A DNA stretch of 63,119 nt, the filler included, from Octopus bimaculoides (Eukaryota), in NCBI RefSeq assembly GCF_001194135.2. It is 4 parts of 4 records of this genome, joined end to end, with 100 filler letters (N's around TTAATTAATTAA, not from the genome) between each part and the next. Parts side by side here need not be neighbours in the genome. Positions count along the whole stretch, not along the records: positions 58,489 to 61,869 come from NC_069003.1; 3 more parts are not named here. The stretch is one strand, 5' to 3'. This document shows positions 60,953 to 61,390 of the stretch, in pieces. The notes below the pieces were generated by a model. That model did no database searches and was not told the origin of the DNA. It saw nothing but the letters and a program-made list of their open reading frames with translations. The first letter of the stretch is position 1; each line of letters begins with the position of its first letter. Both the position numbers and the translations under genes were made by a program.

Positions 60953-61390
60953 ATGATGGTCGGATCGCTAACTGCAAGCATGGAACCATCCAAGCTGATG
61001 TTTCTGTCGCATCTGTTGGCAAGTTTCTTGTCGATTTACCTGTGTGAAGGCTTTACCATCACCGCTAGTCTCACCGAGGAAATGACCACACGTCAGAACC
61101 ACGTCCACAATCGTGGTCACATCCACGGGCACCTGAAACTTCACAGGAGCACCAACTTCCTCACCTGTTACCAATCTGACAACCACAGCACGTCTCTCTA
61201 CGATTACAAATCGTACGACATCCACGGGGCCGAGGAAATACCTCTGTCAGTTTACAGGGATAAGGTACTGCTTATCGTGAATGTAGCCAGTTTCTGAGGG
61301 GCAACTCCCCAATATTTAGGAATGAATGCACTAGAAAAAGAATTTAAAGATTTTCATATTTTAGGATTTCCATGTAACCAATTCTGGTTG
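60953..61390 (+). CDS. GPx: Selenocysteine glutathione peroxidase (secreted, GPx3-like), first coding exon, partial
   Basis: Continuous frame ...[34 protein letters not shown](TGA 61295-61297)[31 protein letters not shown]. Both GPx signature motifs flank the TGA. Hydrophobic signal peptide from ATG 60953, 60956 or 60980. GTGAGT donor at 61391 (phase 0). Confidence 0.95.

Follow-up and report, generated by a model that had tools for sequence, protein, structure and literature searches.

Classical glutathione peroxidase (GPx) genes of the selenocysteine (Sec) or Cys type are documented from cnidarians to molluscs (PMC8614756). Most invertebrate sequences of this class shift between the GPx3/5/6 and GPx1/2 clades according to the tree method used and have been called cGPxIn (PMC8614756). 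Octopus bimaculoides is included in this record: Table S1, Dataset 2 of Trenz et al. 2021 (Biology 10:1165; PMC8614756) lists ObimGPx03 (XM_014928597.1) with U at the active site and “Yes” for selenocysteine. Literature searches for the cephalopod selenoproteome or cephalopod SECIS elements found nothing specific beyond that paper.

The DNA analyzed here, referred to as the window, is a stretch of 63,119 nucleotides, filler included, from O. bimaculoides made of four joined parts, one of which (58489-61869, from NC_069003.1) contains the locus of interest. Window positions 60358-61390 very probably represent exon 1 of a functional O. bimaculoides gene for a Sec-containing classical (tetramer-type) GPx.

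An in-frame TGA at the active site

The segment from 60953 to 61390 on the plus strand translates in a single frame, whose 146 codons run from Met1 to Leu146. Its codon 115, counted from the ATG at 60953, is TGA (61295-61297) and lies within NVASF-U-G (NVASF-TGA-G, 61280-61300). The ORFs at 60794-61297 and 61322-61507 are in the same frame, with this TGA as the sole stop separating them, and translation bears out the preliminary description, which had them joined through TGA 61295 at that motif. The GPx signature 2, LGFPCNQF (residues 137-144), is found after the Sec site, where it had been placed. The last codon, TTG, ends at 61390 and is directly followed by GTGAGT at 61391-61396. The coding features are as follows.

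60953-61390, plus strand: coding part of exon 1 (translation; GSHPx match; 193 nt identical to XM_014928597.1)
61295-61297, plus strand: UGA codon 115, predicted to be read as selenocysteine, the peroxidatic residue (sequence, alignment and conservation in cephalopods)
61361-61384, plus strand: GPx signature 2, LGFPCNQF (translation; the half after the TGA matches GSHPx alone)

With Cys replacing the stop, the exon 1 product matches positions 1-64 of the 108-position Pfam profile GSHPx (PF00255) with an E value of 3.9e-19 and a score of 68.7 bits, against a cut-off of 27. When each half was scanned alone, profile positions 1-31 were matched by the residues preceding the TGA (E=2.6e-4) and positions 34-64 by the 31 residues that follow it (E=3.1e-7). 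Since the two halves match at adjoining profile positions, the TGA sits on the active-site column, and the GPx match on either side of it is confirmed to be far beyond chance. In alignments with solved structures, whose best matches to the exon 1 product are GPx5, GPx3, and GPx6, TGA 61295 falls on the active-site Cys of GPx5 and GPx6 and on the U-to-G position of the GPx3 structure 2r37.

Conservation of the TGA codon in cephalopods

At least five other cephalopod sequences have TGA at the same codon, and in each of them the frame beyond it is conserved. These are L001, a cDNA contig of a second octopus with 85.6% nucleotide identity, which reads NVASF*GSTPQYIGMNALQKEF; the genomes of Octopus vulgaris (L005) and Argonauta hians (L006), where the TGA is kept and the coding sequence beyond it is conserved; and transcripts of more distant, probably decapodiform, cephalopods (L002 and L003/L004), which yield complete GPx proteins of 230-247 aa when the TGA is read through. 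The database entries for the proteins from L002 and L003/L004 show W at the Sec position because the original gene caller translated TGA as Trp. The locus thus shows a feature of eukaryotic selenoproteins, a conserved in-frame UGA at the Sec/Cys position of homologues combined with coding conservation downstream.

These data bear on whether the TGA could be a true stop, arising by nonsense mutation, in a pseudogene, or from an assembly or sequencing error at a Cys codon, in which case a 114-aa fragment or nothing would be made. Such a stop would agree with Table-11 ORF calling and with several public gene models, which stop or start at this codon. Further, support for the TGA of this assembly comes only from a matching RefSeq-derived sequence and from other species. 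However, the same TGA is found in five independent cephalopod sequences, from genomes as well as transcriptomes, with strong conservation of the protein beyond it; the post-TGA half matches GSHPx by itself; the spliced L001 transcript keeps the TGA; and SECIS-like elements are present in orthologous 3' untranslated regions (UTRs), as described below. A true stop is therefore exceedingly improbable, and the codon is best regarded as one that specifies Sec.

Exon structure and the full-length protein

The alignment of L001 with the window stops exactly at 61390, after which L001 matches exon 2 of the O. vulgaris gene (L005 26616-26665), so that its junction reads NQFWL|QEPGAN. The equivalent of 61390 is thus joined to QEPGAN in the cDNA, which verifies the earlier proposal of a canonical donor just before the expected QEP motif.

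61391-61396, plus strand: splice donor GTGAGT of intron 1, phase 0 (end of the L001 alignment; continuation of L001 into exon 2)
61391-61869, plus strand: start of intron 1, 479 nt up to the edge of the part (contains two SINE-like copies, 61482-61574 and 61748-61840)

In O. vulgaris, the coding sequence of the gene is divided among three exons, and the splice sites are canonical. Exon 1 ends at L005 10069; exon 2 (L005 26617-26760; 144 nt, 48 codons) encodes QEPGAN...TYLK; and exon 3 (L005 28776-28982) encodes SYCPSPK...DIRWNFEKFL...EEKEEF, followed by the stop codon. The same three exons are found in Argonauta. Intron 1 of O. vulgaris spans about 16.5 kb (L005 10070-26616), and exon 2 therefore cannot be within the O. 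bimaculoides part of the window. Downstream exons with QEP and WNF had been anticipated, and both motifs exist: QEP, with the catalytic Gln, is seen only in the orthologues (L001, O. vulgaris exon 2, and Argonauta), and WNFEKF is seen in the orthologues as well as in public O. bimaculoides proteins (A0A0L8G4P1 and ObimGPx03), where the last exon, including WNFEKFL, is visible. The remainder of the GPx catalytic tetrad (Gln in QEP, Trp and Asn in WNF) is accordingly present outside the analyzed part. The predicted O. bimaculoides protein comprises 146 + 48 + 68 = 262 aa. By analogy with O. vulgaris, the 3' UTR of the O. bimaculoides gene would be located roughly 19-21 kb downstream of the part.

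For comparisons with known GPx proteins, we used a composite full-length protein made of O. bimaculoides exons 1 and 3 and O. vulgaris exon 2. It covers positions 1-108 of the 108-position GSHPx profile (112.1 bits, E=1.3e-32). Its highest scores against solved structures are with GPx3 (170 bits), GPx5 (165 bits), and GPx6 (163 bits) (PDB 2r37, 2i3y, and 7fc2), followed by GPx1 (141/129 bits) and GPx2 (126 bits); monomeric GPx4/7/8-type structures score about 101 bits or less, and GPx7/8 themselves score 60-72 bits. The alignment with GPx3 (2r37) extends over residues 79-246 with two small gaps of 1-2 residues and includes CPSPKQDFASVERLHYKPMSANDIRWNFEKF. The composite also has the oligomerisation segment of classical GPx, which is missing from GPx4/7/8; it is encoded by exon 3, which is not in the window.

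SECIS-like elements in orthologous 3' UTRs

Candidate SECIS elements were sought with a motif-plus-fold scan, which asks for ATGA, a closed helix, an unpaired AA 9-15 nt in, and a 3' GA. It replaced an initial rigid scanner that missed the clear element in L003. In two species the scan returned one outstanding candidate each, at L003 1601-1642 and at L005 31017-31063 of O. vulgaris, ranked first in the respective stretch scanned. In O. vulgaris, the candidate lies 2035 nt past the stop codon in sense orientation, and no other SECIS-like hairpin on the two strands of the 39-kb locus ranked as high. The two elements align as CTT(T/C)ATGAC-helix-CCGAAACC-ministem-GGTGG-helix-CTTGATA(T/C)GAT, and both are followed by AATAAA 110-140 nt downstream. 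When the helix II pairs of the motif-scan folds are compared across the alignment of these two sequences, two of the five pairs in the lower helix II have changed on both sides in a compensatory manner (G-C to A-U and A-U to G-C), and one pair has changed on a single side; for helix I, conservation between the two is not clear. The two regions do not fold more stably than their shuffled versions (z = +0.35 and +0.08), which means that thermodynamics lends no support to the SECIS call.

Rfam SECIS models gave no match, even at E<=10, in the analyzed part of the window, the four transcript contigs, a 3.5-kb O. vulgaris 3' region, or 277 nt around the L003 element; the remaining Rfam matches fell largely on microsatellites or were weak and due to chance, involving miRNA and snoRNA models. 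When the two sequences were used to build a covariance model, L002, L004, L006, and the window gave no match to it, and scanning metagenomes at large for the core SECIS pattern yielded prokaryotic chance matches only. In L002, which has the in-frame TGA and a full ORF, no SECIS-like element was seen in the 1.4 kb of 3' sequence (847-2290); the contig may be chimeric, or it may stop short of the SECIS. Taken together, the L003 and L005 elements give limited support, from two sequences, for a putative SECIS of type 2 that is conserved at the end of a long 3' UTR.

Combining these data, exon 1 would encode positions 1-64 of the GPx domain, preceded by a signal peptide and a His-rich linker specific to octopods, with the peroxidatic residue specified by the UGA at 61295-61297. 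It would be spliced at 61390 to the distant 144-nt exon 2 (QEPGAN...TYLK), carrying the catalytic Gln, with the catalytic Trp and Asn provided by exon 3 (SYCPSPK...WNFEKFL...EEKEEF). A SECIS hairpin near the end of the long 3' UTR would recode the UGA as Sec during translation, and the mature enzyme, most likely secreted, would reduce H2O2 and organic hydroperoxides through a selenol/selenenic acid cycle.

N-terminal region and predicted secretion

Two features precede the GPx domain in the predicted protein.

60953-61051, plus strand: predicted signal peptide, residues 1-33, with likely cleavage after CEG (hydropathy)
61100-61144, plus strand: His-rich linker, residues 50-64, between the signal peptide and the GPx domain (translation)

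The hydrophobic core spans residues 15-31 (17 residues), with Kyte-Doolittle means over 11 residues of up to 2.17 that become strongly negative from residue 37; small residues, C31-E-G33, follow the core. The same N-terminal layout is found in the orthologues from O. vulgaris, Argonauta, and the more distant, probably decapodiform, cephalopods. Judged by hydropathy alone, the signal peptide is probably cleaved, and hence the protein is probably secreted. The Sec-GPx might instead carry an uncleaved signal anchor or be targeted to the ER or another organelle, making it membrane-tethered or ER-resident like GPx7/8. Consistent with this, the h-region is rather long, at about 17 residues, the n-region would have 14 residues if translation starts at Met1, and the case for secretion comes from computed hydropathy only. 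Nevertheless, such a location is unlikely, given that the small residues at C-E-G suit a cleavage site, the C-terminus, EEKEEF, has no KDEL-type ER retention motif, the composite protein scores 163-170 bits with GPx3/5/6 versus 60-72 bits with GPx7/8, and the classical-GPx oligomerisation segment is present.

The His-rich linker of the putatively secreted enzyme varies in length among octopods. It reads HVHNHGHGHGHLKLH in O. vulgaris and HIHPHGHGHGHGHGHHRIH in Argonauta (the latter also given as HGHGHGHGHGHH), and is found in L001 too. It is absent from the more distant, probably decapodiform, transcripts L002 and L003/L004.

Upstream region, 5' UTR, and repeats

Upstream of the initiation codon, the following elements were recognized.

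60323-60330, plus strand: TATA box (TATATAAA) of a putative promoter (read from the sequence)
60358-60952, plus strand: 5' UTR part of exon 1, about 595 nt (collinearity with L001; putative transcript start)
60503-60545, plus strand: 19-bp perfect (GGY)n/(GCC)n hairpin in the 5' UTR (folding)

The block around the TATA box is nearly identical at the orthologous locus of O. vulgaris, and the box ends 28 nt before the start of the L001 alignment (60358). From there, L001 230-1257 is collinear with window positions 60358-61390, at 85.6% identity and with no intron between. Positions 1-229 of L001 match neither the window nor O. vulgaris, which makes the exact 5' end of the transcript uncertain. 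This unmatched segment starts with GTAAGT and ends, where the homology begins, with a pyrimidine tract followed by AAG, resembling an acceptor site; it may be a retained or alternative upstream intron, an extra 5' exon, species-specific sequence, or part of a chimeric contig.

The hairpin at 60503-60545 has a folding energy of -47.2 kcal/mol (z = -6.1), with none of 200 shuffles folding as well, and the same GGY/GCC repeat arrangement is found around positions 355-415 of the cDNA L001. The hairpin may be no more than a microsatellite, or it may impede scanning ribosomes. The hairpin and the His-rich linker are the only features of the gene that are even mildly unusual, and any function of theirs is putative. 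It has been considered that the octopod linker (HxHxxGHxHGH) makes the secreted seleno-GPx metal-binding (e.g., for Cu/Zn in copper-rich haemolymph), and/or that the 5' UTR hairpin gates translation. Linker metal binding or hairpin gating, if true, would add a lineage-specific regulatory layer to an otherwise ordinary enzyme; we view this proposal, its two parts taken jointly, as quite unlikely.

Microsatellites and SINE-like repeats abound in the DNA around the gene. An interspersed SINE-like repeat of about 140 nt is present in two copies, 84-88% alike, at 58489-58632 and 59235-59373; within the 39-kb O. vulgaris locus L005 this repeat has more than 12 copies, some in each orientation. A second SINE-like family (CTGGCAGAATCGTTAGC...GTTCTGAGTTCAAA...GGTTGACTTTGC) is represented in intron 1 by two direct copies, 81% alike, at 61482-61574 and 61748-61840, with an (ATT)n or (GTT)n microsatellite ahead of each, and has many copies in L005. 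ARAGORN detected no tRNA gene within the intron 1 copies. An assembly gap of 150 N (59434-59583) is located between long (TG)n, (TA)n, and (CA)n microsatellites, and the microsatellites at 59127-59433, 59584-59833, and 60046-60225 are the source of nearly all sub-threshold Rfam matches, mostly to miRNA models.

Public gene models

Over its first 193 nt, the ORF shows no difference from the XM_014928597.1 coding sequence printed in Table S1 of PMC8614756. ObimGPx03/XM_014928597.1 represents the same gene, and its protein is identical from Met1 through exon 1. This model then runs into intron 1, where 48 nt (61391-61438) are erroneously read as coding VSRPHTFFHFFISCIG, and appends KFCENVTGVQILLFLFQ; the terminal LLFLFQ of this addition also appears when the 3' end of O. 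vulgaris intron 2 is translated. It lacks exon 2 and the catalytic Gln, whereas use of the 61390 junction gives the 262-aa protein. The UniProt entry A0A0L8G4P1 (A0A0L8G4P1_OCTBM; P0004) is identical to the window over MTTRQ...VYRDK. Its match ends at SVYRDK (61264), from where it jumps to SYCPSPKQDF of the last exon and skips the Sec codon; the donor used is the following.

61265-61266, plus strand: cryptic GT, donor in the A0A0L8G4P1 model (comparison of the protein with the window)

In O. vulgaris, the model named “Glutathione peroxidase 6” starts with the Met after the UGA, and in the Argonauta model the protein stops at the UGA. It had been predicted that standard gene callers would truncate or mis-splice the gene, and the four public models are indeed wrong, in four ways. 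These faults are routine selenoprotein annotation errors and not biology.

Two gastropod GPx models also appear to skip the segment with the Sec codon: P0126 from Batillaria attramentaria, which reads LSRYSNQ|YLALSALQ, and P0138 from Nucella lapillus, which reads LLLVN|YLSLNALE. This suggests that errors of this kind are widespread in the annotation of mollusc genomes.

The preliminary description had placed the novelty of the locus in its annotation and its lineage. The former holds; the latter is small, because the Sec of this gene was already recorded in Table S1 of PMC8614756. The gene and its Sec are known and the enzyme class is a textbook one, which leaves annotation repair. Studies of cephalopod antioxidants, selenoproteome counts, or GPx phylogeny that use the faulty entries inherit their errors, and the corrected three-exon, 262-aa structure and the position of the O. 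vulgaris SECIS-like element are small, usable fixes. They do not change the knowledge of selenoproteins or GPx.

Relationship to GPx3/5/6 and to invertebrate classical GPx

The resemblance to GPx3, GPx5, and GPx6 that had been noted for the C...LYDY segment is genuine: the Cys ahead of xLYDY is shared, and these three proteins provide the best structure matches. The label “GPx3-like” holds as a statement of likeness (170 bits, with GPx3 ranked first) but not as one of orthology, as placement with GPx3/5/6 or GPx1/2 depends on the method (PMC8614756). From sequence comparison, a secreted, GPx3-like classical seleno-GPx is a fair description of the resemblance.

In favor of direct orthology to vertebrate GPx3, as opposed to membership in a separate invertebrate classical-GPx group, human GPx3 is the top solved-structure match, the Cys preceding the xLYDY motif is shared, and Trenz et al. 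gave the sequence the name ObimGPx03. However, the comparison made here consists of pairwise scores (GPx3, 170 bits, versus GPx1, 141 bits), and most invertebrate classical GPx fall in GPx3/5/6 by one method and in GPx1/2 by another (PMC8614756). Direct orthology is therefore a possible but rather doubtful reading of the likeness.

Like the octopus gene, vertebrate GPx3 (plasma), GPx5, and GPx6 combine an N-terminal signal sequence (predicted in the octopus protein) with a Cys and then xLYDY before the domain, NVAS(Y/F)UG at the active site, VRPGxGFxPNFxLFxK, and an oligomerisation segment before DIRWNFEKFL. The octopus gene differs from them in having the octopod His-rich linker and in reading NQFWLQEP where they have NQFGKQEP. 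It shares its domain layout and predicted signal peptide with the invertebrate cGPxIn group, including its own paralogue ObimGPxIn01 (XM_014919675.1). That paralogue is of the Cys type: where the Sec gene has UGA, it encodes Cys (NVATFCGYATQY) and needs no SECIS.
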